DNA of 64,000 nt from Lepidodermella squamata (lineage: Eukaryota; Animalia; Gastrotricha). The notes beneath the pieces are model-generated. The model saw nothing but the letters and a program-made list of their open reading frames with translations, was not told where the DNA came from and did no database searches. A program made the translations under genes and the position numbers. The stretch is taken from positions 3,658,001 through 3,722,000 of the forward strand of contig JBLDXI010000003.1 in NCBI GenBank assembly GCA_047495785.1. Direction: 5' to 3'. Positions within the stretch are counted from its first letter, which is position 1. Every line of letters starts with the position of its first letter. Shown one piece after another: positions 16,100-31,118 of this stretch.

Positions 16100-17237
16100 A
16101 TGGCTTATCAATTCGCGGCAATCTTAATTGTCCTTCTCGGTTTGGCAGTGATGGAAGTTGCACCGCAAAAATCTATCAAATCAATTGGCCAAAGTATGAT
16201 TTTCGTCACCAGTGATTCTTGAGTCGTAACGCGTCTTTTTCAGCTTGTGATCCATCGGGCTCTGATTGCGGGAAAAATGCGGTCTGTGACCAAGTCGAGC
16301 CGTGTAAAATGGGCCGGTGCGCGTGTATTTCGACCAGATATCGCCCAATTACAGGGTCGAACTCTACGACAGATTGCGCCCTAATCCTCGACGTCGGCGC
16401 CTCGTGCAATGACAGCGATGCCTCACTTCTGCCTCCATTTTCTTCCTGCATCAACTCCACAGTCACTTGTCAAGCAAAAGTGAGAATTTCATGCGATCAA
16501 CGATTTTTAAGGCTAATTTTTCTATTTTTTAGTCAAGCGATGGTAACTGTAAAGCAAGCAATGTTGTTGATAAATTTGGCGATAAATGCGGAAATTCGAC
16601 AACATGTGACTCTAGTCGAGGCTTGGTTTGCGGCAGTAACGGTCTCTGCGAGTGTTTACCGAACATGGCGCCTCAGAGTGACAGTTCATGCCGCACAGCC
16701 GGGTTCGCCGAGCCGTGTCTGACGCAGCAAGAATGCACGTATCCAGCTCTGGGAAATTCCCCATCGTCGTCGGCTTCAGTCTGCGACGGCGTGGGTGAAG
16801 CGTCGAAGAAGTGCTCATGTGACTGGAATAACAACTCGACGGAAAATTTTAAGACACGCGTCGTAATTTTCGGATTTCCAATCCCGTATCGGGCGAGTTT
16901 CAAACTGGCGCCACGGGGTGTCTGTCTGCGGATCCCGAGGGCGTCGAATGGGGAGTTGAGGCTGAATGACAACTGCAGTGTGCCGACTTTCGAGGCGTTC
17001 GGAGATCCGAAGAGCAAGAACCCGATGCCGGATGCCTTCTGTGATTGGGTCATGAACTTTGCATGCGTGCACTGCCCTGAAGATGGCGATGCAGATCTGT
17101 TCGCTGGGAAATGCCGTAGTCTCATACTACCGACTACACTGCAAACCCTTGACGGGCGGAAGTCGTCGTCTTCAATGTTAACAGCAGCAAAACTATACAC
17201 AGTTATTATCTCATTATTATTGATTTACTTCAGGTAG
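16100..17237 (+). CDS. Secreted/GPI-anchored cysteine-rich (EB-module-like) protein, 3 exons
   Basis: Signal peptide MAYQFAAILIVLLGLAVMEVAP, repeated C-x-C/CEC/CSC modules, hydrophobic C-terminus; introns near 16194-16242 and 16480-16532. Confidence 0.7.
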
Positions 17238-17270
17238 TTATATTTAGAGTAAATTTAACGAGTAGATGCA

Positions 17271-17430
17271 TCAGCCGATGAATACACTTCTCTTTGAATT
17301 CCTCGTTGAAAGCTTTCAGAGCCGTTATGATTTTTCGAAGCCTGTTGGCGGATACATATCAAGTCAATGGCTAGTGAATTCGTTTCTTGGCGATTTGGCT
17401 AGTGCTTCAATTTCTTTCAGGCGATTTGCG
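17271..17430 (-). pseudogene. Decayed, frameshifted duplicate of the CARD-encoding 3' end of the NPC1-like gene
   Basis: Reads KEIEALAK / ETNSLAID / RLRKIITALKAFNE in different frames and ends in TGTATTCATCGGCTGA, versus TGTATTCTTCGGCTGA at the gene's stop (17587). Confidence 0.65.
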
Positions 17431-17586
17431 CTTTGGCCAATGCTCGTAAGTTTACTGAACCATGCGGATGTTGTCCAAGACTCACTCTTCACGGAAGAGA
17501 GAAAAGAATGATCCCTTTTGTCGTCGACTTTTTCCAAAAATGCCTCTCAGTAGTATCGCTTTATTCCAGGAGCTTGGGCATTCCGG

Positions 17587-20500
17587 TCAGCCGAAGAATA
17601 CATTTGCATCGTAGAAATTTCGAGCCCTAAGAGCATCCTCGAATTCCCTGTAAAATATTGTGATTTGAAGTCATTCGATTATTTAGATAAATTGGGATAA
17701 CTGACTTGGCATCTGCCTCATTGAAAGCTTTTAGGGCCTCCATGAATTTCGGAAGCCTATCGACGTATTTGAGCAGATACAAGTCTATAAGTCCGTCAAC
17801 AGCCAGTGAATTGGTTTCCTGTATAAAAAGAGGTTTGACACGGATGATTGAACTGCTTTGGGCATTATAACCTTAGCCTCCAAATGTTGAATCTCTTGCT
17901 GATTCACGAAATTACAGCGCAGCAGCAAATTGCGAAACGTCTTAATGCCGTCTTTCAAATCCAGTGTCGTTTGCCAATACGGTCGCCATTCGTCCTGATT
18001 AATCACATCAGCGAGTATCTTCAGCTTATTCATGGTCTCCACTCTCGGCCTGGCCGACGGCGGTGGGGGCCCATCCCTAACACCTGGAGGCCTTGCAGGG
18101 TCCGGGCTTATGGGCGGGCCATCACTAGTGCTTGCAGGCGGAGAGCCAACTTCGATCTGACCGAACTGCTGCAAATCTCTAGCGAAGGTGTTGTCTACCG
18201 TGTCATCTTCAGCCAGCATAATTGCGGTTTTCCCATCCTTATTCCGACATCTCAACCATTGCTTTCTCTCTGCGTGATTTTCTTTAAAGTGCAAAGCTGC
18301 ATATTTCAAAACGATGCCGAAGCTTTCGGGATCCTTTTTCTTGATAGCCATGATTAGGGGCGTATCCCCACCACAGCAATCTAGCCCACCACCACAGAGG
18401 CAAAACTCGTCTACAGCAGCCGGCTTTTCTTCAAGAAATTTGTCTAAGCCAGTCATGTCCTTCGAAGAAATAAGCATGAAAATCTTGTGTATGTCGTCCT
18501 GTGGCAACGTCGATCCGGCATGAGTTTTGGGAGCCGCCTGAATCGTCGTTTCACTACGAGATTTCGGCGCTTCTTCCGCCGGCTTCTTAACTGCATTTTT
18601 GACTGAACTTTGCCGTTTCCAAGTCAGAGAGAAATATGTCCCGGGCAGAATGAATCCATAGATTATCGGAATGAAGAAAGTAGCTGCAAACAACAGCCTA
18701 ACATCAGATCGCACAAATAAGGTCGCAGCAGCGAAGAGGAAGTAAGCTGGCTGTAAGTTTATCGTTTAATTGTTAACAGAAAAGTAATGGATGAAAATAC
18801 TTGCTCACCAAATGCCAGAGGAAAGAGTGCTGCCGCCCCATGCCTAGCGAATGCCGGAAGGCGACACTGTATGCGAATTGAAATGTCAAAACCACGCAAA
18901 GAATAATGTGCGATGTAGTAATCTGGCTTAACGAGCTAGCGTTGAAGCGTGTTACGGAAGTAAGGATGGCAGAAAATGAGCCAAATGTTGAAATCAAAAT
19001 GAATATCGGGTAAAACACTGCTAGTAACCACGATGCTAAATATAACTTGAAGTTATTGAGGATTCACAATTGAGGATTAAGAACTAACCTCGCGAAAAAG
19101 GTCTTTGGCTCGCGATCGGGAATGCTGACATGGTAACAAGGAAGAAAATCGCCGAGGCGGTCATAAAACCATAGTAGTAGTTGTTCCATGGGAAGCTGTG
19201 CTGAAGAAGTCTTTTCGAATGAACGGTGACCATGTAAACGTCTGAGACAGCATCTGCGATCAACGCGACATCTTTTAAAGACCGGAACCTTGCTTCGGGA
19301 TCAGAAGTCGGCTTGAAATAAGCCTCGAAAGCAATGGCTATAAATTCATGTTCAAAATTGTCTTTTCAAGTCGAACATCTCACCTTCAACTTCACCGTTG
19401 TAGTAGACCAGTCTAGAGAAGCCTGGTTGAGCACTACGTGAAGCATAATAGTCGAACAAATCATCCAGAAGGGGTAATCAATCACTCACCCAAATGGACA
19501 GTGCGGGTCTGGCTTCTGCAGCAAATATTGATGAAACAGCTGCTCGAAGTCCTCTTCCGTGGGAAGGATTTCGGGGGAATAGTCCTCACGAGCTTCGGCG
19601 CATCTCTGACACGTGCGATAACGTTCGTTAGCCCAGGAGTCTCCAGGCCTACATATCGTCCCATTCAAGTATCTGGCGCAACAAGTGCGGTACCAGTCAA
19701 TGAAACCGTCGATCGAAGAAATTTCCGCGACAGCTATACTCGAGCTAGACTGCCTTGATAACACTGCAAGTCTGTTTTGAATTGAATGTGCCTGACATCC
19801 TGGTAAGCTACAGAGGCGGTCGACAGCACTCCACATCGATAGATTCCCTTTCGGCTGGACGATGAGATAAACAACTTCTCCAATAGGAGAGTTTTCGATG
19901 AGGTAACTCAGATGCTTGCTGATATTAGAGTTCTATTTAGACAGGTATTAGTGCTCAATAGAAATGATGGCTGAATGCTGATTGCTAACCTGGGGTATCA
20001 AATCCATTGGAAGGTTCGAAAATTTCTCTTGATAAGTGCTGAAACTCGCTGCGTTCATTCCCATAGGGACCAAAAGGGCGAAGATCTTGGCGCAAAGAAA
20101 TATTTTTTAGACAAAATCACTATATAAATCGCTAATACCATTAAAGCTTTGAAGAGGTAAACAGCAATTTGAGAACCAGCACTCGTGGGGGATTTCGGAA
20201 TACGATTCCTAAGTCTATCCAGAGTTGACAGAAACAAATTATCGCCACGGATGCACTGCAAACACGTTTCTTGTAGAACCTTCAGATTACCACTATATAT
20301 TGCCTCAAACCTGCGAAAAAACAGCAGTGTACCCCATGGATACAACAACTAGAGACCAGTGGCTCAGAGTCAACAGAAATGCTGCAGCAACACATGTCAT
20401 AGCAGTATATGGGGCGTTGAAAAGCCAAGCTCCTAAACAATTTGATAAAATTGAGGAGCTTTGAGATTTATAAATACCTGGCACTAGAAATCCGATTTGT

Positions 20501-23257
20501 AGACACCTTATCAAACCGATCTTGACGTTAACGTACTGCGTAACGGCCTTCTCTAACTGAAAAAGAAAAACTGTATTCACAGTGACGAACAGAAATGTCT
20601 CGCCCTCGCCTCTTTAATTGGTGATTGCGCCAGTTGTCTTGCGGAGTAAACAACTGTAGAATCGTACTCCTGTCGAAAATATTCAGCTTTGATATTACCA
20701 TTAGACTGTCAATTATTACTGGATGTAGTTTATCGGCCTGTCCCAAGTGGAGAAGGGCATGATGAATTTCTATCATCAACATGAAGAATTCAAGCAGTTG
20801 ATTCCGATGTGGTAGAGCTAAGGCCAAGACCAGGATTTCACAGAGAGGAAGCACCAAGAGTCCGAGTACCAGACCAAGAATACCAAGCTCCGAAATGCGG
20901 CGATCTCTTATACGAATATTCGAAGCCTCAAGTTCTCTCGCCTGTCGACGTTGTCGTTTCGCTTCCTTCCACGATTGGAGAGAGGCAAAGAACGTCGGAG
21001 TCGAGCGAATTGCGACAACAAGGATTAAGCATATTATCAAAATTGCATTAAAAATGATCCCTCGTGGCCTCTCCTGCAACTCCTTATCAATATCCCGATG
21101 AAGCAGCGCCTTAATTAAGACACAGTGTTAACGATATCATTCAATGCAGATTGAAACGTACATCTGTATACCATGATTGAACGTAAGAAAATCGTTTGTT
21201 CATTTTTGCTGTTTCAAAGGTGTATTCCTTCCTGATTTCAGCATCAATAGATAAGGATAACTCATAGTAAGACGTATCACTCTCTCGCTCCTCAATCGCA
21301 AAACTAATGATTAGGCTTTGAAAGGTAGGATAATCGGTGCCTGAAAAATAGAATTAGGAGTATGAATGGCTCAATTGGAAGAGATTAACCTTTGAACCCG
21401 GCTACCACATGCCACGGATAAGTGACTTCTCCCGATCCTTTCCCAATGCAAGAAATATCTATTGGTATCCTAAAAGTTGAAATTATTCAAAAAATGTTAA
21501 TGAAATTTCAAAAGAAGATACGTGGTGCATTTAGCCATGTGGGAAACATCGTCATCAATAAAATCGACATCCTGGCTTTGCAAATAATTGAAATAGCTAT
21601 TGACAAGGCATTCGCTGTCAGCCGCCTTGTAACACATGCTCCTGATTGAAAGTTTCCCGCGGCGAAAGTCAAGGATTGCTCGCTGCAAATCTGCAACCTG
21701 CTTTCACATCGTTAGAAAATTGAAAAATGGCAAAATGATCGAACCTCAGCGAAAAAGTCGAGCTTTGAGCTGCTTGTGAGCTGTTTCATGGGGTTCACTA
21801 AAATTGTTACGTCACGATAAACCTTGCCATTCCTATAAAAAGATACAGACATAAGTTCCTGAGATTTTGGATAGTTTCTTACCGAAACAGCCGATTGAAG
21901 CGGGCCTCGTTTCCGGTTGGAAGGAACATGTTAGCTGCAGTTTCAGGGAGGAATTGATGCTTACTGGTGAAGTAGTAGACGATTGATAAAGTGAAGGCTA
22001 GCACGCTGATTATGAAGGATATTATGACAAAGAATCGATTTTTGAATTGGCTGTTTGCAAATGTCGAGAAGGCATGAGGACCACAATGATTAGCTGTGAA
22101 ATCTGATCTTGTGCTTGGCGATTGAAGCGATTGAGGCAACATGACTTCAAGCACTTCGTCCTCATTCGCAACATATTGTTGAGCATTGACTGTCGACTTC
22201 CGTGTCGTGAGGCAACAACAGCAACAACCACACCAGTTCAGAATCATGAGACCAAAAAGGACAGCCACGGAGATAGCAATGGCCCCCACTGAAAGGATGA
22301 AGATTCTATCCCATTTCTTAACCGAAGAAGGGTCACGACTTTTTAGAGGCGAAAAGCACTCTTCAGAGTTCAGGCAGTTGATACAGGAGGAGGGAAATCC
22401 TTGCCTGCGGTAGAATTTTCCAGGTTCATTACACGATCTTGCTGGCCTTGAATAGCCAGTGAACGAATTGTCATTCTTCAGCTCTTTTGGAAATGGGCCC
22501 TTGTAGCTGATTTTAAAAGTCATCGCCAGCTCATCGAGATCTTCATCTTTTTTAACTTCCAATGATCGGAAAAAATCTGAAGGCCCACATTTTCCACCTT
22601 CGCAAACAAGGTCCAGAACTGTTCGATTACTAGCCGGGAAGAAAGTATCGCTACAACTTTCGTATAGAGTTTTGGCATATTCAGGCTTCAAATAAATGAT
22701 TGCTTCCGTGACAAATGCCAGATTTTCAGCAGGGCTATGAAACAGGCCCGAATTCGGAATGGAGATGAAAGCGGATTGATTTGGGCTGCAGGCACTGTCG
22801 CAGAATAACTGCATAAGATTCTCCGAACAGGTCGGGGAAGCGTGGTATAACTCGAGAATCCTCTCGAAATACGTCATTGATAGGTAAATCAAGAATCCAT
22901 GGGGACAGCAAAGTTTACCGAGTGTTTGACTTTTACCTATTTAAGCATAAGAAACTTGAAAGTTAAAGTAATTGTGCGAGTTGAATTACCTAAAAGATGC
23001 GGGCAATATCGTCTAGCGACCATTGCAATATTCTCATCCCGACCTTTGGTTGAATTTCCAAGTGCGTTCTTTGATTTTTCCAGAACCATTACTCCATCAG
23101 ATGATTTATCCTCGTACGGATGAATCGGAGAAAAGATGCAGTAACTCCCGGCAAATCGCAAATGGGCAGCCACGGTCTGAAATGAACCCTTGAAATTTGA
23201 ACCTTAACAAATGTATTAATTATTTACCAGGAATAATATCGTCCAGCTTGGTTTCAT
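17587..23257 (-). CDS. Divergent NPC1 (Niemann-Pick C1/Patched family) protein with C-terminal ankyrin repeats and a CARD-like domain, multi-exon
   Basis: Signal MKPSWTILFL; NPC1 N-domain CSENLMQLFCDSACSPNQSAFI; middle loop CLVNSYFNYLQ; SSD-like TMs; Cys-rich loop IDGFIDWYRTCC..QKPDPHCPFG. The final TMs continue in the same ORF into GDTPLIMAI / NKDGKTAIMLA ankyrins and a CARD-like domain. Not every internal junction was verified. Confidence 0.8.
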
Positions 23258-23458
23258 AATTCAGCTTCCTTTGAGAGTGGTCATGAAACAGTGTGGAGTT
23301 CGATCGGGATTGAAAACATTCATCTTAAAAAGGCAATTAGTGCATTTTCCGACTGGTCTGCATTTTTATTGAGTTTTGACATTGGGCCAGTGCTAGACTA
23401 GATAAAAAGCCGCTATTAAAGATAAAACAGAAGCTAATGGTGTCCATTATAATCAAAA

Positions 23459-24640
23459 CTACAGTTTCTTTTCGCGAGATAACGGCGTGAATAAGCAGAA
23501 AAAGTGAAAGCGCTGCACGCACATTTTAGCTCTTCTCGCTAGTGTTTGTCTGATACCGCCACTGCCAAAGCCGAATGCGTCATCTCCTATCGTCTTACAC
23601 TGCGGGTCTTTACCACAGACGTGTCGTTTGATTTGATCTGAGAGCAGTTCAATGTTGGATTTTTGAAATCCACCTGATTGAAACTCTTCAATAAACATCT
23701 CCAGCAAAACAGTATCCCAGGTCGAAAGTGTCAATTGAACAGGGTAATAAGCGTCCAAATAGGAAAACCAGTTGGTCGGATTTTGATAAATCAACTGCTC
23801 AGTTGTCGTGTTGATACCCGGGATAAACGGGTAAAAGTCTTTACCAACATCTTTAATCACGCGAGTTGCATCTGGAAAGCAGCCAGGAGAGGTCTCTTCA
23901 TTAGAGTTCAATGTTGGGTAGTTCCCAGATTTTTGCATAGCAATCATCCTCTCTCTTGTGAAAAGAGTAACGTTCGCAAACTGGATACCAAACTTAGCCT
24001 CCTTAACAAAATGAGTGCCATAGTCTTTGACAAAGCCTTCAAATAGCTTCCGAGAGGTGTCATTATCCTTCTGATGCGGCTGGCTGAACAGGCGGTAAAC
24101 TGATCTGGAGAAATCTAGCCGCAAATGAGCTCGCTTGAAGATATTCAGCATTTTAACGCTGATTGATCGATTATGGCAGATGATATGGTTCAGATGTAAG
24201 CGTGTTTCCTGATTGAAAGAATTGTTGTATGTGCTGTACAATGAACTTCTAGAAAACGCGGTGTAGGGATTGCCAATTTCATCCGAATCGCTGTTATCCC
24301 TCAACGGATGCTCAATAGAGTAAGCCCAAGCCTTGTCATTTTCTCGAAAAATCAATTCCTTCGCGAAGCTGTTCATATCATTGTACCACTTGTTGAGCAA
24401 ACATCGGCAGTAGTTAGGGCCAGGCGCATACTCGATATCGAATAGATTGTCGTACTTCCCTGTATCTGAAGCATTTTTGACTGTTTCGAGATTGAAGGTA
24501 GGTTTGAAACTCTGCGACTCCAATGGGAAGTTTGACATGATATCATAGCCGCGACCGATGGCGTCGTAACTTTCGACGATTTCTTGAAAAATCGTACATT
24601 TCACCGTAGTAATCAACAAAGCGTAAAACAGGATTATCAT
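23459..24640 (-). CDS. Secreted MACPF-domain protein (MACPF only), intronless
   Basis: Signal peptide; IGRGYDIM; FVKDYGTHFVKEAKFG matches the MACPF signature. Confidence 0.85.
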   Translation of the reverse strand: MIILFYALLITTVKCTIFQEIVESYDAIGRGYDIMSNFPLESQSFKPTFNLETVKNASDTGKYDNLFDIEYAPGPNYCRCLLNKWYNDMNSFAKELIFRENDKAWAYSIEHPLRDNSDSDEIGNPYTAFSRSSLYSTYNNSFNQETRLHLNHIICHNRSISVKMLNIFKRAHLRLDFSRSVYRLFSQPHQKDNDTSRKLFEGFVKDYGTHFVKEAKFGIQFANVTLFTRERMIAMQKSGNYPTLNSNEETSPGCFPDATRVIKDVGKDFYPFIPGINTTTEQLIYQNPTNWFSYLDAYYPVQLTLSTWDTVLLEMFIEEFQSGGFQKSNIELLSDQIKRHVCGKDPQCKTIGDDAFGFGSGGIRQTLARRAKMCVQRFHFFCLFTPLSREKKL

Positions 24641-24709
24641 TGAATGGTTTTATTTAAAAAATGTAATGACTGGAAGCGAGATTAGTTTAGATTAATAAAA
24701 AATGACTTT

Positions 24710-26539
24710 TCAAGTTCTGATGCAGAGGTACTGAGCTGCGAATGCGTACGATTTTGAATAACCAACGTAGCCAATTTGCATTCGTTGGTAGCCGGGAGGG
24801 CATTCCAATGATCCAGTAATTTCATTCGCTTGCTCAATTTCCGCACACTGGGGGCTTGTTTTGCAACTGACAAGATTTTTGCCCGGATTACCAGCCATTT
24901 TTTGATAACCACTGTTGATTGGAGCACCTTTAATGTTTCTCTCGTTGAGGCATATTACAAACTGCCAAGAGAAGAACTTCCCGTAGACGTAGTCTCTGAA
25001 ATTTCTTGGACAGCTCCTAGTCTTCCTCGGGCTCAGTGGGTTTGACGAATGACTTAGCTCGCCAATGGCACCGAGCTTGTTAGACATGCATTCTTCGGTT
25101 TCAACTGTAGAGCTGTAGTCGGCAAGTTCCCAATCATGGTCATCACTTTCGCAGCTCTTGACTCGAACATCCCTGTTCTCACGAATGAACATTCCACCGA
25201 AGTGAGTTTCCTCCTTCGCATCCCGATTGCTTAGTATGCATACTTTGTGGGTCACTGTGCACGTTTTTGATTCATCATTGGCAACAGTCCAAGTTACAGA
25301 TCCAAAGGTCGTTGGATTGTAGCCAAGATTGCAAGCTGGCCTGCCCGAGGAATGGAGAGGGTTCGAAATGTTGCTAACCTCCTTGCATGTGCTGATCTGA
25401 AATGCTCCTCCGAAGGTTGGCTGCTCGTTCTTTTTCATCGGCTCATCGGCTACCTTCCCACACATGGCAGGCGCTTTAGGGTAGAGAACTAGCTCACAAT
25501 AGTCTTCCAAGTAGCTTTCAAGGGTGGTCTTGCGATCGGCGACAGAATCTGCATCTGAGTCAGGAAACAAGTCTTGCGACATCAAACTTGTTATTGGTTT
25601 CATCGTCAGGGATAAGGCAGCGGGTGATTTCTTAGTGGCCTCCAGCCAATCCGAAACTTGGTTTGACGGAGGTTTCGGCCCAAGGGAGAAGTAATCAGCT
25701 TTGTTACCGAAAATAGTTCTGTTTTTCGCAATAACAGCTTTTGCCAGAACTTCTGGATCGATATTGCCGATTTTCGCGAATTCCTTGGGAGTGTAGACAA
25801 CTCGGAGGCCGAAAATGCTTCCAAGCTTGACATCCGTTACAACATGCGTCCCAAATTTGTCGAGGAACGGTTGGAAAGTTTGTTTCAGCTCGCTTCGTAG
25901 TGGCATAACGGTAGGCAGAGCCATTACGGCGGTATTAAAGGTTTTCGTGACTGGTGGGTTGTTGCTAGCTTTCACTGATGAACAGAATGAGGTCTGGCAG
26001 GTGAAATAGACGATCAACATCTTCCTTCCATGCAAAAACTGAGCTTGAATAGCATCGAGGTTGGTTTTCTGGGCTTCTCCATTGTACTTGAATGACGCTT
26101 CATTCACGTATGGATCGTGGATTTCCAGCCTTTGATCGAGGAACTTCTTGTAATCTGAATAGGAATCCAGGACTTTAACCGATGGTGTGAACGAGCATCT
26201 TTCAGAGCAATAAATGGGCTGTAGATACTCGCTTGTGACAGATCGGCCATGAAGTTGCCAGTATAGGCGCATGGCGAAACTCGACTGGCGTAGCCCGGGA
26301 TCAGTGCCATCGATCGAGAAGGGATTCGACTCAGCCAGGTTGTAGCCAGCTCCGAGATAGACCTTGTAGGCTTCAATTTTCGGGTCTGTAGGTAGTTTCG
26401 GGACTTGTAAACAAAGTCCCATCGGAGTTTTGAAGTGGCGGCATAGTTGGCTCGCAGCTTCTATTGTTTTCGCATCTTCCTCCAATTTCGCCGCATTGGC
26501 GAACGCGATTAAAAACGGCGCAAATATCAAGGAAATCAT
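24710..26539 (-). CDS. MPEG1/Perforin-2-like MACPF protein lacking the TM anchor, intronless
   Basis: Signal peptide; YLGAGYNLAESNP..DPG; FLDKFGTHVVTDVKLG; P2-type repeats FGGAFQ..NPL..CNLGY, FGGMF..NPL..SCPRNF and NEITGSLECPPGY; no C-terminal TM. Confidence 0.85.
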   Translation of the reverse strand: MISLIFAPFLIAFANAAKLEEDAKTIEAASQLCRHFKTPMGLCLQVPKLPTDPKIEAYKVYLGAGYNLAESNPFSIDGTDPGLRQSSFAMRLYWQLHGRSVTSEYLQPIYCSERCSFTPSVKVLDSYSDYKKFLDQRLEIHDPYVNEASFKYNGEAQKTNLDAIQAQFLHGRKMLIVYFTCQTSFCSSVKASNNPPVTKTFNTAVMALPTVMPLRSELKQTFQPFLDKFGTHVVTDVKLGSIFGLRVVYTPKEFAKIGNIDPEVLAKAVIAKNRTIFGNKADYFSLGPKPPSNQVSDWLEATKKSPAALSLTMKPITSLMSQDLFPDSDADSVADRKTTLESYLEDYCELVLYPKAPAMCGKVADEPMKKNEQPTFGGAFQISTCKEVSNISNPLHSSGRPACNLGYNPTTFGSVTWTVANDESKTCTVTHKVCILSNRDAKEETHFGGMFIRENRDVRVKSCESDDHDWELADYSSTVETEECMSNKLGAIGELSHSSNPLSPRKTRSCPRNFRDYVYGKFFSWQFVICLNERNIKGAPINSGYQKMAGNPGKNLVSCKTSPQCAEIEQANEITGSLECPPGYQRMQIGYVGYSKSYAFAAQYLCIRT

Positions 26540-26633
26540 TTTAGTAAAAATTCTAGGGAAAGAAGATTAGAGAACAAATAATTTATTTATCGAATGAGAT
26601 CGCGGGTCTTATAAAAATAATTCTGAAAGAGAT

Positions 26634-27236
26634 TCACACATCTGGTAAAGGCTTCTGAGGAAGAAGCCGAGTTGAAGATGGTGAATCTGGTAACTTTGGT
26701 TTAAAGCATAGCATTTTCTTCATTTTGAAAATATAGACCACGCTGAATATTGTTACAATACAAAAAGCTGTCAGGCAAATAGCCATTATTAGAGTAACCA
26801 TGCCAATTCCTGAGTCTGGTTGCTTGATCGCTGCTTGCATTTGAATCACAGCCTCAGTTACTGGAATAGCTTCGACAGTTGATGTTACTCGAGGCTTAGT
26901 TGATGAAGTTGTGATTTGAGCAGTCGAAGGAGGAACTGTCACTTTTGTGGACATTTTTGTGGTAGGATTACTATTGCAAAGGTCATCGAAGCAGCAATCA
27001 GCATTCAGGCAATCTTGAGCGGACGCGCAACTCCTCATGTTGAGATGGCCGTATTCCAAAATTGCACAGGCGTGGTCATTTGAATCCGACTCGCACGTCA
27101 TGATTTGAAAATTCTCTTGATTCTGGCACGTCACTTTGTCATCGATGGAATTCGGCAGGCACGAATAGCATTTGAGAACATCGCCTGATGACAGGCTGAC
27201 CATAGTGGTTAAGAATGTTAGCAATAATTTCGTCAT
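26634..27236 (-). CDS. Ly6/uPAR (three-finger, CD59-like) domain type I membrane protein with mucin stalk
   Basis: Signal peptide, LKCYSC...CCFDDLCN with 10 Cys, Ser/Thr stalk, TM, short Pro-rich tail. Confidence 0.88.
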   Translation of the reverse strand: MTKLLLTFLTTMVSLSSGDVLKCYSCLPNSIDDKVTCQNQENFQIMTCESDSNDHACAILEYGHLNMRSCASAQDCLNADCCFDDLCNSNPTTKMSTKVTVPPSTAQITTSSTKPRVTSTVEAIPVTEAVIQMQAAIKQPDSGIGMVTLIMAICLTAFCIVTIFSVVYIFKMKKMLCFKPKLPDSPSSTRLLPQKPLPDV

Positions 27237-27789
27237 GTTTGCAGAATGAAAAAGGGCATAATAAAAATTGCTACCTCAATCGCTTTGTTTGCACGGTCAT
27301 TTTTTCATGTAAAAAACAATAATAACTCGCGAGATATCAGGAGGAGATATTTTATATCGTTCGCTCGCACTCGGCATATAGTATTTCTCTGTTACTGGGA
27401 ACGAAGCGAGGTCTAAATGCACTGTTTACGTTGGCCAGCTACGCCTAAAGCTGGATACTGAGCTGGACCAGATAATGCACTCAGAGTTCTAAACTTGGAG
27501 AAGAACCATCGCGTTTAAATTTAGCCCAAATTTCCTGCGAAGGCACAATAAATGAACTCACGCCGGTAAATGCGATGCGGTTTCGATTTCCATTATACGG
27601 TCTCGACAAGTTCGGAAATCGATTTTCAATGGAAATGAATCGTCTGCATTGATTAGATAAAATTCCCACCCTTATCTTTACGTCGCGCAATTCCTCTGAA
27701 AAAAACATGGTTCTACGCCTCACTGAGGGCATTTAATCATTCATAAAACCACCTTTTACACAGCTAGGTTGTATTGTCTGATTCGCAGG
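27237..27789. promoter_or_regulatory. Probable bidirectional promoter between the Ly6 gene (-) and the NEK-ankyrin gene (+)
   Basis: Head-to-head start codons ~550 bp apart; positional inference only. Confidence 0.4.
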
Positions 27790-29958
27790 ATGCTGAGGTC
27801 GAGTGCCGACTACAAGATCATTAAGAAAATCACGCAAGGGGGATTCGCCGATGTGTACCTAGTAAACCTTAAGGCGCACGGGGATCAGGAGTTTGTCCTG
27901 AAGCAAGTTTCTATTTCGACCATTGAACAAAACGGCGGCCAGAAAAGTGTGGCATTGACACTTGAAGAGGTAAAGATGCTCTTACGGTCCAGCAGTACTT
28001 GTTAACAAACCTTTGCAGGCAAATTTAATGGCAAAACTGCAGCATCCGCATATTGTTCGCGTTGTCGGGGCTTTCATAGGTTAGTTCGGCTTCTACTCAT
28101 TATTCAAACATGGACCAATACCTTTTCCTTACAGAAGGGGACTACTTTCGATTCGTCATGGAGTACTGTGAGAAAGGTTTGTTTCTTCTTATTGAAATTC
28201 GACGTGTGATCAATCGAGGGCAAATATTCAGGGGATTTGCAAACGTACATTTACAATCGAAAGGGCACTAAGATACCAGAGCAACAAATCCGAGAATGGT
28301 CTTTACAACTAGTTTTAGTATTGAAGTATCTTCACGACCATAACGTTCTGCACCGGGATGTTAAATGCAGGGTACGTTTGGCTGAATTCTTCGAAAAATC
28401 GATTTACGAAAATGCCAATAACAGAATGTGTTTCTTACATCGAATGTTCGGTTTATCAAACTCGGTGACTTTGGAATTGCAAAGCAGCTTGACAGGTTGT
28501 AAATCTGAATTTTGGATTTTTTGAATTACGAAGGCTTCAAATCATTTAGACCCGATCAAGAGGCGACAACGTTAATTGGCACTCCGGCTTATTACGCTCC
28601 AGAATTTTGTGAGAAGCAAATCTACACGTCAAAGTCCGAAGCATGGTCTTTGGGAATTCTGATTTTCAATTTAGCCATGCTGAAAGCTCCGGTGAGTTAC
28701 CGGTATTATTCATAATATTTCAGGATTGAAATTTTTTAATAGTTTGCATATGACGGGAATCTGGTTGGACTGTTCGCAAGCATAACTCAGTAAGTTCGTA
28801 AAAATTAGTTCAGAATGACAATTCAGGTTTTCCTTTGAAGATCTGCCCCGCCTCAAATCACAGCCGAATACTCCAGCGAACTGCGCGATTTTGTCGACAA
28901 GTTATTGCTGAAAAATCCGAAAGATCGCATGTCGATATCTGAATCTTTGACCCATCAATTTCTGATTTACGCAATTACGGAGGCCTGTGATGAAGCGATT
29001 GGCTCGCATCCTAATGCAGCCATCAAGAGAGCGAGCGAGCATGCATACATCAGTTCTCCAATGGTCCTGAAACCGTTGGTAACCGCTCGACAACTCAGCC
29101 CTAATTCTACCGTGAGACCATTTCCAGCCATTTTCCTTCCAAAATCCAGCTTGATTCCCTTTTCAGAGACCTGTCGACATTTTTAATGCTGTTCTAACGT
29201 CTCGAAGTCTGACTCTTCTCCGCGAGTTGATTTCAAACGGAAACAAGCAGATGATTTTGAATGCAAGAGACAAAAATGGCGACACGGTCCTGCATGTAGC
29301 ATCTCGTTATGGCAAAATAGACGTCATTAACATGCTGATAGTCGACGATCGTCAATGCATCACCCCGGAATGGTTGAATCAGAAAAACGAAAACAACGAC
29401 GGGGCAATCCATATTGCCACGGTTCGAAGTGACATCGAAATCGTCAAGAAAATAGTTCGAGCTGGTGGGAATTTGAACCTGCTCGGGGGGTTAGGCGATA
29501 ATAATGAAACTCTGAGCAGAAAGCTGAACCAGCGATTCGCGCCAGAATCCTTCAAGAACATCGAATTCACCCCACTCCACTTGGCGGTTTTGTACAACCA
29601 TGCAGCTACCACTCAGTACTTGGTGACTCACTTGAAAGCCGATGTAAACGCACTTGATAGCAATGGAAATCTTCCGATACATATCGCTTCTCTACTTGGT
29701 CATCTGGATATTGTCAAGTTATTCGTCACGCAATGCCGCCAGTCGGTGAATGTCCGCGGCCAGGATAAATTGACGCCGTTGGATTTTGCGCAGAATAATG
29801 GTCATACGGCGCTGAGTGATTTCCTACGCAAAAATGGCGGCATGTGTGCGCAAGAACTGAATGCGCTCTCACAGTCGAGCCCGCCCGTTTTCAACGCCCC
29901 GGTTCGCTCTTCCGAAGGTTTCGGAAGCGAGCTGAAGATTTCAACGTCTGTTCAATAG
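27790..29958 (+). CDS. NEK (NIMA-related)-like Ser/Thr kinase fused to C-terminal ankyrin repeats, ~8 exons
   Basis: QGGFADVYLV, VLKQV, LQHPHIV, VMEYCEKG|DL, HRDVKCR|NVFL, KLGDFGIAK, GTPAYYAPE; a phase-0 intron (29112-29166) joins in frame to GDTVLHVA / TPLHLA / LPIHIA / TPLDFA ankyrins. Confidence 0.88.
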
Positions 29959-30180: not shown

Positions 30181-31118
30181 TCAAGCGTCAGCAAAGTCTT
30201 GACGGCATGCTCTGCGAAAAAATAATAAAATTTATTTGACTAACAAATTTGAGCTTTGAAACTAACTCAGCAATTTCTGGCTGATAGTCGTCAAGGGCTT
30301 GCAAAAACGCCTCCCATTTCTTTTGATCTCGAACAACATATGTGTCCAGAAGCTCGTCCACGGCAAGAGAATTAGTTGCCTTCAAGGAATGCATGAAAAA
30401 CGTCTAAATTCGACCAAATTGAATCTTACTTTGGCATCGATTGTAGCTATTTCAGTGCTCTTAAAGATTTCGAAGGCTAAAAGCTTAGTACGGAATAGAC
30501 GATCGCCATCGTGGAGTTGTAATTCAGTGTGAAACGTTTCGCGCCACTTGTTCAGCACCTTTTCACGCTTTTTTCTCATCGCCAGCATTTGCCTAGGATC
30601 CATTGCTTTCGGCTTGCTATCGGGCACAGGTTGGGGATTTGCAGGCTCCTTTGGTTTTCTGATAATGTGATCGTTTAAAGGACCTAAATTTAAATTTGGA
30701 ATTCATTTCACCTGTTTGGCTCATTCTCAACTTTGGGAGCTTCTCGTTTAGGTTTAAATTTTTCTAACAGGATTTTAGCTGCTTCTGAATCTTCCTTTGA
30801 CGGGTACTCGCCCTCCTTAGGATGGGCAATAGCCTCCAGTTCAGCTAGAATCGCGTCGACAATTGAGTCCAGCCGAATTTCTCTAGCTGCTTGAACATAA
30901 GCCTCGAGGTCTCGCTCCAGATTAAAATTGAGAATTTCACAAAATTTAGCAACGCCCTTGCGCTTGTTAGTGTCGTATTCGCTCTCGATTTCTTCGACGT
31001 ACTCGAAGTGTATTCTCGTCGCATCTTTCGAGTTTATCTGCCGCACCCATGCTGGAGCGTCGAAAGTCTTCACTTTCAGCATGTTTACAACTCGAATTAG
31101 ACCAAAAGGGGACGACAT
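30181..31118 (-). CDS. Bipartite death-fold adaptor: N-terminal death-domain-like, C-terminal CARD-like, 4 exons
   Basis: N-term helical domain (AWVRQI..EEIESEY..LEAYVQAAREIRLDSIVDAI), Pro/Lys linker, then KWRETF..EIATIDAK|ATNSLAVDELLDTYV..FLQALDDYQPEIAE|ACRQDFADA*. Confidence 0.7.

Follow-up and report, generated by a model that had tools for sequence, protein, structure and literature searches.

Proteins of the NPC1 and Patched type are lipid movers, NPC1 itself being the cholesterol carrier of lysosomes; could one of them also carry a death-fold module within its own polypeptide? The question is raised by a gene on the minus strand of a 64,000-nucleotide stretch of the genome of the gastrotrich Lepidodermella squamata (hereafter the window; C3:3658001-3722000 of a 121-Mb assembly in 151 contigs, which is also the assembly used in all genome-wide searches). 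The window is eukaryotic in character, with about 42% G+C and closely packed genes, and a sequence-only reading of it had seen at 17587-23257 an NPC1-like body that runs on into ankyrin repeats and a CARD-like domain. We favor, with a probability of roughly 0.55, the interpretation that this locus is a single real, transcribed and lineage-specific gene, in which a divergent NPC1 paralogue is fused to an ankyrin/CARD-like cassette and whose product would serve as a membrane receptor or scaffold. We refer to it as the NPC1-CARD-like gene.

The whole coding region (17587-23257, minus strand) was modeled by frame-threading, wherein nine RNA-supported introns were forced, GT-AG introns of 44-74 nt were allowed elsewhere and the path with the fewest extra introns was taken. 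The resulting model has 19 exons separated by 18 introns of 44-73 nt and comprises 1561 codons plus TGA. It extends from an ATG at 23257 to a TGA ending at 17587, which agrees with the coordinates and strand first proposed, and its 4.7-kb spliced frame passes through all 19 exons as an uninterrupted 1561-residue frame, free of the internal stops that would mark a pseudogene. An AATAAA read in the sequence (17560-17565, minus) is situated 22 nt past the stop codon. Transcript evidence comes from X1, a public run labeled only “RNA?”, in which 41% of the window’s sampled words are present, read alongside the DNA-like run X2, in which 96% of them are. Contig joints in X1 skip 49-58 nt with minus-strand GT..AG ends (GC..AG in one instance) and none are seen in X2; hence, X1 appears to carry spliced transcripts of the NPC1-like gene. 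Among the joints listed, X1 contigs back nine of the 18 introns, all on the minus strand: the GT-AG introns 17648-17705, 17819-17871, 18751-18808, 19036-19088, 19434-19489, 20670-20719 and 21341-21389, the GC-AG intron 20557-20609, and the intron 21833-21882, across which the loose end of an X1 contig reads. Among the inferred junctions, an NPC1 alignment runs across the one from exon 7 to exon 8 and backs it, and for the inferred donor of intron 14 there is another site 12 nt off that also preserves the frame.

The joint between body and tail is central to the fusion. At intron 16 (18751-18808, minus) an X1 contig, with 46 nt on its shorter side, is spliced with GT..AG ends from the membrane exon (…WHL) to the tail exon (PAYF…), exactly at the in-frame joint that had been predicted at 18750. 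Moreover, the link between membrane and tail is independent of splicing, since exon 17 (18750-17872, 879 nt) is a single open frame, as was first read from the letters, which holds the last membrane helices, about 45 polar residues, the ankyrin-like region, a Pro-rich stretch and the first half of the CARD-like domain. It is these observations that bear on the possibility that the fusion is an artefact, with two neighboring genes joined in the model, or else a decaying pseudogene with residual transcription. In favor of such a view, only half of the introns have RNA support, X1 consists of short contigs and its RNA status is guessed, a decayed CARD copy lies immediately downstream and no orthologue was found. 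However, a single unbroken exon codes for membrane helices, ankyrins and the first half of the CARD-like domain, a spliced contig ties that exon in frame to the upstream membrane exon, and the 4.7 kb of spliced frame lack a stop; hence, we regard it as very improbable. The haplotypes seen in X2 argue against it too: they differ at 15 of the 157 positions in 17732-17888 (~10%), these being confined to exon 18 and intron 17, with no differences listed for the rest of the gene. Of the haplotype differences listed, the tail exons have seven that are synonymous and three that are conservative non-synonymous, and the 53-nt intron 17 has nine. By our own rough binomial, in which about 27% of random changes are synonymous, at least seven of 10 being synonymous has a p of ~0.006. 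We take these as signs that the tail might be under constraint.

The part of the protein predicted to face the lumen or the exterior is recognizably that of NPC1. Exons 1 and 2 (23257-23228 and 23176-22990, minus; both introns inferred) supply the ATG, a hydrophobic signal-like N-terminus and the start of the NPC1 N-terminal domain. Exon 3 (21883-22936, minus) codes, by Pfam and hydropathy, for that N-terminal domain, the first transmembrane (TM) helix (TM1, residues 284-302), a cytosolic loop and TM2 (residues 374-392). On the 353-residue open stretch 22940-21882, Pfam recovers NPC1_N (PF16414) at 5.5e-26 (92 bits; cut-off 27), which is the sole significant Pfam match on all the exon pieces. 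A hidden Markov model (HMM) of nine full-length NPC1/NPC1L1 proteins, retrieved by way of one of the genome’s canonical paralogues, aligns colinearly with residues 31-624, comprising the N-terminal domain, helices 1-2 and the middle lumenal domain, and then with residues 890-1083, comprising the C-terminal lumenal domain. The middle domain is encoded by exons 4-7 (21183-21832, minus; introns 21833-21882 and 21341-21389 RNA-supported), is covered by the NPC1 HMM at ~400-620 and displays a C..S..YF.N-type motif. The Cys-rich C-terminal lumenal domain is encoded by exons 13 and 14 and the beginning of exon 15 (19171-19932, minus; intron 19434-19489 RNA-supported) and matches positions 882-1080 of the NPC1 HMM with 60 bits; exon 13 alone retrieves NPC1L1 structures with phmmer at 2.5e-7. 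Further, 24 of the 26 cysteines that are invariant in the nine references are kept (14 of 16 in the N-terminal, four of four in the middle and six of six in the C-terminal lumenal domain). The N-terminal domain and lumenal loops noted in the sequence-only reading are thereby borne out: all three lumenal/extracellular NPC1 domains seem to be retained along with their disulphide framework, and the outer domains seem capable of folding.

Hydropathy points to about 13 membrane segments at NPC1-like positions, five of them beyond the C-terminal lumenal domain; helices 1, 2, 3, 4 and 8 and the five C-terminal ones are clear, and helices 5-7 are only moderately hydrophobic. Exons 8-12 (19990-21109, minus; intron 20670-20719 and the GC-AG intron 20557-20609 RNA-supported) contribute TM3-TM8, i.e., a counterpart of the sterol-sensing domain (SSD) that has diverged strongly, followed by helix 8. 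Exons 15-17 contribute five hydrophobic segments, TM9-TM13 (18646-19170, minus; introns 19036-19088 and 18751-18808 RNA-supported). On the exon pieces there is no Pfam match to SSD or Patched at E up to 10, and the NPC1 HMM has no match over the sterol-sensing region or TM9-13 in any of the three DNA frames; the canonical paralogues on contigs C20, C55 and C15 score 263-635 bits over that membrane region of the HMM. Two motifs, G(V/A)DN in the SSD and SVEF in TM11, are present in all nine of the reference NPC1/NPC1L1 proteins and neither is found in the NPC1-CARD-like protein; in a forced alignment, which is tentative, EIHH stands at the GVDN position and TFQF at the SVEF position. The same alignment reveals the colinear islands ISLGI.G, IG..VP..S.S..LGA, FNA.SL and F.P...P, the last two of which lie within the TM9-TM13 region, aligned with NPC1. 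From these short islands, we regard the membrane core as homologous to that of NPC1 and much diverged, with two conserved charged positions that are, tentatively, changed. Thus, the NPC1-like fold of the earlier interpretation holds for the lumenal domains and the membrane segments, but the core is far more diverged than it had allowed, without an SSD or Patched match and with both GVDN and SVEF lost.

Given that the SSD signatures and the two conserved charged motifs are gone, we think that this protein is no longer a proton-driven sterol pump; its membrane engine looks disabled. A counter-view would have it as a still working endolysosomal sterol transporter, whose tail serves only in sorting, turnover or cytoskeletal anchoring with no death-fold role. 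The three lumenal domains and cysteines that are kept, the ~13 membrane segments at NPC1 positions, the colinear islands in TM4-6, TM10 and TM13 together with some persisting titratable residues, and the fact that anchoring is a frequent role of ankyrins are compatible with it. Nevertheless, both motifs that are (nearly) invariant in the nine NPC1/NPC1L1 proteins are lost, the SSD and Patched models do not recognize a core for which the canonical paralogues score hundreds of bits, and the end domain belongs to a family whose profile matches a genuine CARD. We accordingly hold a working transporter of this kind to be quite unlikely.

Past its polar stretch, the tail carries what are likely to be ankyrin repeats, about three in number and with loops that are long, contained within exon 17 (18160-18495, minus; residues 1297-1408). 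When exon 17 was compared with 1.84 billion protein representatives, the sole match was to a 2215-residue protein (P0001; 4.8e-26, in 13 stretches), which is an ankyrin-repeat array by Pfam, and this search found no relative of the tail exon besides it. The ankyrin region of the tail is in register with three 43-residue repeats of P0001 at 33% identity. An AlphaFold2 model built with the ankyrin alignment has a predicted local distance difference test (pLDDT) score of 69, and the top 50 PDB matches of this model in Foldseek are all ankyrin proteins, with a template-modeling score of up to 0.58. Hence, the ankyrins of the earlier interpretation are supported by P0001 and by the Foldseek matches, but they stay below the Pfam cut-off. 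They are followed by a Pro-rich linker (18046-18147, minus; residues 1413-1446), read from the translation, which is of low confidence and unstructured in the same model.

The last 111 residues constitute the CARD-like domain (17590-18033, minus; residues 1451-1561), CARDs being docking modules of cell-death and immune signaling, encoded by three exons (18033-17872, 17818-17706, of 113 nt, and 17647-17590) whose two introns are both RNA-supported. It is a member of a genome-specific family of seven domains, each split over three exons, the relatives having been found by tblastn and genome searches. The tail and its relatives in the nearby adaptor gene and on contig C48 display a phase-0 intron past helix 3, a middle exon of 113 nt (119 nt in a single case) and, at a common residue, a phase-2 intron. 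Scored with an HMM built from the remaining members, the tail reaches 34.1 bits, against 11.7 for the best of 2000 shuffles, and the domains from contig C48 alone (described below) score it at 21.1 bits. Searches via caspases and NB-ARC genes for true CARDs yielded one, that of a hagfish Apaf-1 (P0017; 1238 residues), which was reached through an NB-ARC query and thus independently of its CARD. The family HMM finds precisely the N-terminal CARD of this Apaf-1 (residues 11-87, 16.3 bits), a match that persists in every leave-one-out; the seven-member HMM finds residues 9-87 with 22.1 bits (E 1.7e-7 among 18 proteins); and hhalign of the family against the Apaf-1 CARD gives 77% (E 2e-5), covering helices 2-6. 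Additionally, Pfam CARD (PF00619) matches the middle exon of a nearby adaptor paralogue at E 0.003 (18 bits; cut-off 23.9) over profile positions 43-83.

Together, these profile matches make a death-fold reading of the end domain probable. The CARD-like end that had been proposed is indeed completed by two further exons and its CARD likeness is recovered by profiles, but not by Pfam CARD on the tail pieces themselves. One could instead accept the architecture as real and regard the end domain as a lineage-specific helical domain that is CARD-like merely in its sequence pattern, consistent with the tail on its own matching neither Pfam CARD nor Apaf-1 nor any entry in the PDB. Such an account is unlikely, in our estimation, as it would leave unexplained why the family HMM finds exactly the CARD (9-87) of an Apaf-1 fetched via its NB-ARC domain and does so through the leave-one-out, the 77% of hhalign, and the fact that half of the adaptor’s domain aligns with Pfam CARD (E 0.003) at the correct profile positions. 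A six-frame search of the genome with Pfam CARD gave two weak matches only, one of which is a dynein heavy chain and was discarded as a false lead. ESM Atlas look-ups with the first CARD half and with the N-terminal domain of the adaptor gave no usable match.

The relatives of the end domain also bear on where the tail came from. Used as a query against its own genome, the tail exon finds only the adaptor gene (30190-31118, minus), 12.7 kb away, which codes for a 135-residue domain devoid of Pfam or Atlas matches, a Pro-rich linker and the CARD-like domain closest to that of the tail, with both intron positions and phases and the 113-nt middle exon as in the tail. An adaptor consisting of the CARD-like domain alone was considered and rejected; a 53-nt GT-AG intron (30711-30659) most likely joins the 135-residue upstream domain to it. 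On contig C48, a further gene (C48:668750-671896, minus) combines a canonical ankyrin array (Pfam Ank 4e-72) with two CARD-like domains having the tail’s intron positions; therefore, the ankyrin and CARD-like combination also exists as a soluble protein. On the same contig a small tandem-domain gene (C48:688350-691463, minus) codes for two CARD-like domains, each with a 113-nt middle exon. Finally, just past the stop codon and the AATAAA of the NPC1-CARD-like gene, there is a decayed CARD-like copy (17233-17546, minus), recognized as tblastn fragments in two frames, which differs from the DNA of exon 18 by indels of 4, 1, 4, 1, 6 and 3 nt and has no ATG. With this downstream relic, the nearby adaptor and the ankyrin-CARD genes elsewhere in the genome, the most likely source of the tail is a local duplicate of an ankyrin/CARD-like cassette that was joined to an NPC1-like gene. 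The decayed copy was also tried as an alternative last exon and rejected in view of its frame-breaking indels. An X1 contig covers 17450-17610, which overlaps this copy.

NPC1_N occurs at no fewer than six loci of the genome, and of these the gene on C20 shows 39% identity to vertebrate NPC1 and all the Pfam domains; the separate canonical NPC1 that the sequence-only reading had suggested looking for is therefore present, represented by the high-scoring paralogues on C20, C55 and C15 mentioned above. The NPC1-CARD-like protein has about 25% identity to the genome’s own NPC1 genes, over the lumenal domains only. It is an extra divergent paralogue distinct from the housekeeping NPC1. In addition, there is a second NPC1-like gene with a CARD-like end on contig C17 (~23400-27900, minus), which likewise shows NPC1_N and C-terminal lumenal matches, these being weak, along with a membrane core that no HMM recognizes. 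Unlike the gene in the window, it lacks ankyrins, a long low-complexity linker without such repeats preceding its end domain, and its body and CARD-like domain are very distant, giving no tblastn match to those of the NPC1-CARD-like gene at 1e-3. That end domain scores 15.7-19.2 bits with the family HMM, has an intron at most one codon from the shared position, and has a stand-alone duplicate of the tail segment 6 kb downstream (C17:17700-18250) with ~70% protein identity. Thus, to judge from these profile matches, the NPC1 plus CARD-like architecture is recurrent in this genome, with a free copy of the domain nearby at both places. The architecture had been called undescribed, which agrees with the protein libraries and papers searched, but within this genome the gene on C17 is a second NPC1-like gene that ends in such a domain.

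A bolder extension of the favored interpretation is that divergent NPC1 paralogues have, either at least twice or once long ago, been turned into a small class of polytopic receptors whose outer domains bind a lipid, sterol or pathogen ligand, and whose own CARD nucleates assemblies with CARD adaptors that were duplicated locally, leading into a caspase, NB-ARC or pore-former pathway of defense or death. We consider it possible though doubtful; if true, the occurrence of the domains both fused and apart would be a “Rosetta stone” that links NPC1-type proteins and CARD adaptors functionally. Elsewhere among the NPC1-related loci, four NPC1_N-like copies at C17:2317-14005 are arranged in alternating orientation near the contig start with two stops inside each match, and could be fragments, pseudogenes or intron-split genes. 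An NPC1-like gene at C15:1402000-1411999 has clear N-terminal and middle lumenal domains; within these 10 kb there is no recognizable membrane core and no CARD-like match.

Returning to the favored interpretation, we propose that a divergent NPC1 paralogue was joined to an ankyrin and CARD-like cassette of the type that also occurs as separate genes, and that its product acts as a membrane receptor or scaffold rather than as a sterol pump. This role is preferred because the outer domains look foldable, the membrane engine looks disabled and the tail would be cytosolic by NPC1 topology, as is predicted for the C-terminus as a whole. Binding of a ligand, or clustering, on the lumenal side might bring the cytosolic CARD-like domains together, and the clustered domains could then recruit CARD-like partners in a like-with-like fashion. 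Candidate partners would be the adaptor, whose gene lies at a distance of 12.7 kb, and the C48 proteins that combine ankyrins with tandem CARDs. The structure of the gene, its splicing, the homologies of its domains, the lost motifs and the family to which the end domain belongs are observed, whereas topology, loss of transport, the CARD fold, recruitment and whatever output follows are inferred. A role in sensing sterol, membrane damage or virus, which the sequence-only reading had put forward, is conjectural, as is signaling itself.

Several observations weigh against this interpretation. With regard to the gene, nine of the introns are inferred, the RNA status of X1 is a presumption only, and the X1 contigs are so short that no single molecule covers both body and tail; an orthologue was not found in protein searches with exon 17, nor with exon 3 within its length range. 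With regard to transport, the claim of its loss stands on a forced alignment, in which the residues at the GVDN position include a Glu and two His, and a Glu is aligned to the first conserved membrane Glu. With regard to the ankyrins, Pfam Ank_2 reaches 15 bits on the tail, below its cut-off of 27.3, and the fold matches are weak (E 0.03-0.13) and come from a model driven by the ankyrin alignment. With regard to the end domain, Pfam CARD has no match on the tail pieces nor on most of the paralogue pieces, the tail alone has none to Apaf-1, and PDB searches returned nothing significant, whether the query was an exon (that of the tail or of the adaptor) or one of two three-sequence profiles, with CARD11 at only E ~0.8; AlphaFold, given the tail exon as a single sequence, reached a poor pLDDT of 44.

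Within 23459-29958, the gene-neighborhood of the NPC1-CARD-like gene includes two tandem MACPF genes on the minus strand that adjoin it, a plus-strand gene at 28240-29958 with a kinase fragment and ankyrin repeats, and a weak CD59-like open reading frame at 26637-27236 (E 0.0017, below the cut-off). On its other side, Cys-rich EGF-like open frames with a hydrophobic tail end and no Pfam match (16219-17237, plus) converge on the 3′ end of the gene. At the genome level there are at least 47 NB-ARC loci, mostly open frames of ~900-1000 residues, versus about three caspase loci. The neighbors together with this NB-ARC and caspase content fit an immune or cell-death setting, and prove nothing.

Each part of the NPC1-CARD-like protein is of a known kind and it is the combination that is new. 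It shares with NPC1/NPC1L1 the signal-like start, the order of the three lumenal domains (NPC1_N, middle, C-terminal), 24 of the 26 cysteines, membrane segments that hydropathy puts at matching places and a C-terminus predicted to be cytosolic. It differs from them in that its SSD is unrecognizable, GVDN and SVEF are gone, and a 310-residue ankyrin and CARD-like tail takes the place of the short sorting tail. A literature search for the combination of NPC1, ankyrin and CARD found no paper, protein and literature searches for a polytopic NPC1/Patched-type protein with a CARD found none, and a length-limited protein search with exon 3 as the query returned nothing in its length range; to our knowledge, no polytopic NPC1/Patched-type protein with a CARD has been described.

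Death-fold modules are known from receptors such as the TNFR-type death receptors, UNC5 and p75NTR, and from ankyrin scaffolds such as the ankyrins themselves, NF-kB p100/p105 and ANKDD1, which pair ankyrin repeats with a death domain; these modules are thought to act by like-with-like oligomerization. The NPC1-CARD-like protein would resemble them in having a cytosolic module of the death-fold type on a membrane protein or beside ankyrins, but theirs are death domains and are borne by single-pass or soluble proteins. If its tail is a CARD, then a scaffold of the NPC1/Patched superfamily can be wired straight to death-fold signaling, which would make this locus a natural experiment. It also suggests partners to test, namely the nearby adaptor and the genes that combine ankyrins with tandem CARDs, and it extends the domain shuffling known from the innate immunity of invertebrates by a receptor type that was not expected there. 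Should the tail turn out to be something other than a CARD, the locus would come down to an NPC1 paralogue that is ordinary, if very divergent, apart from its odd tail.

The closest parallel is offered by Patched-1, a dependence receptor whose cytosolic C-terminal tail assembles a caspase-activating complex of DRAL/FHL2, CARD8/TUCAN and caspase-9 (PMC5864239). Patched-1 is a 12- or 13-helix protein of the same superfamily (Patched-like RND), and it is its cytosolic tail that engages the CARD machinery. In Patched-1, however, the CARD resides on separate adaptors, whereas the NPC1-CARD-like protein would have its CARD-like domain built in. Hence, Patched-1 may well represent the nearest known logic for a protein of this kind.

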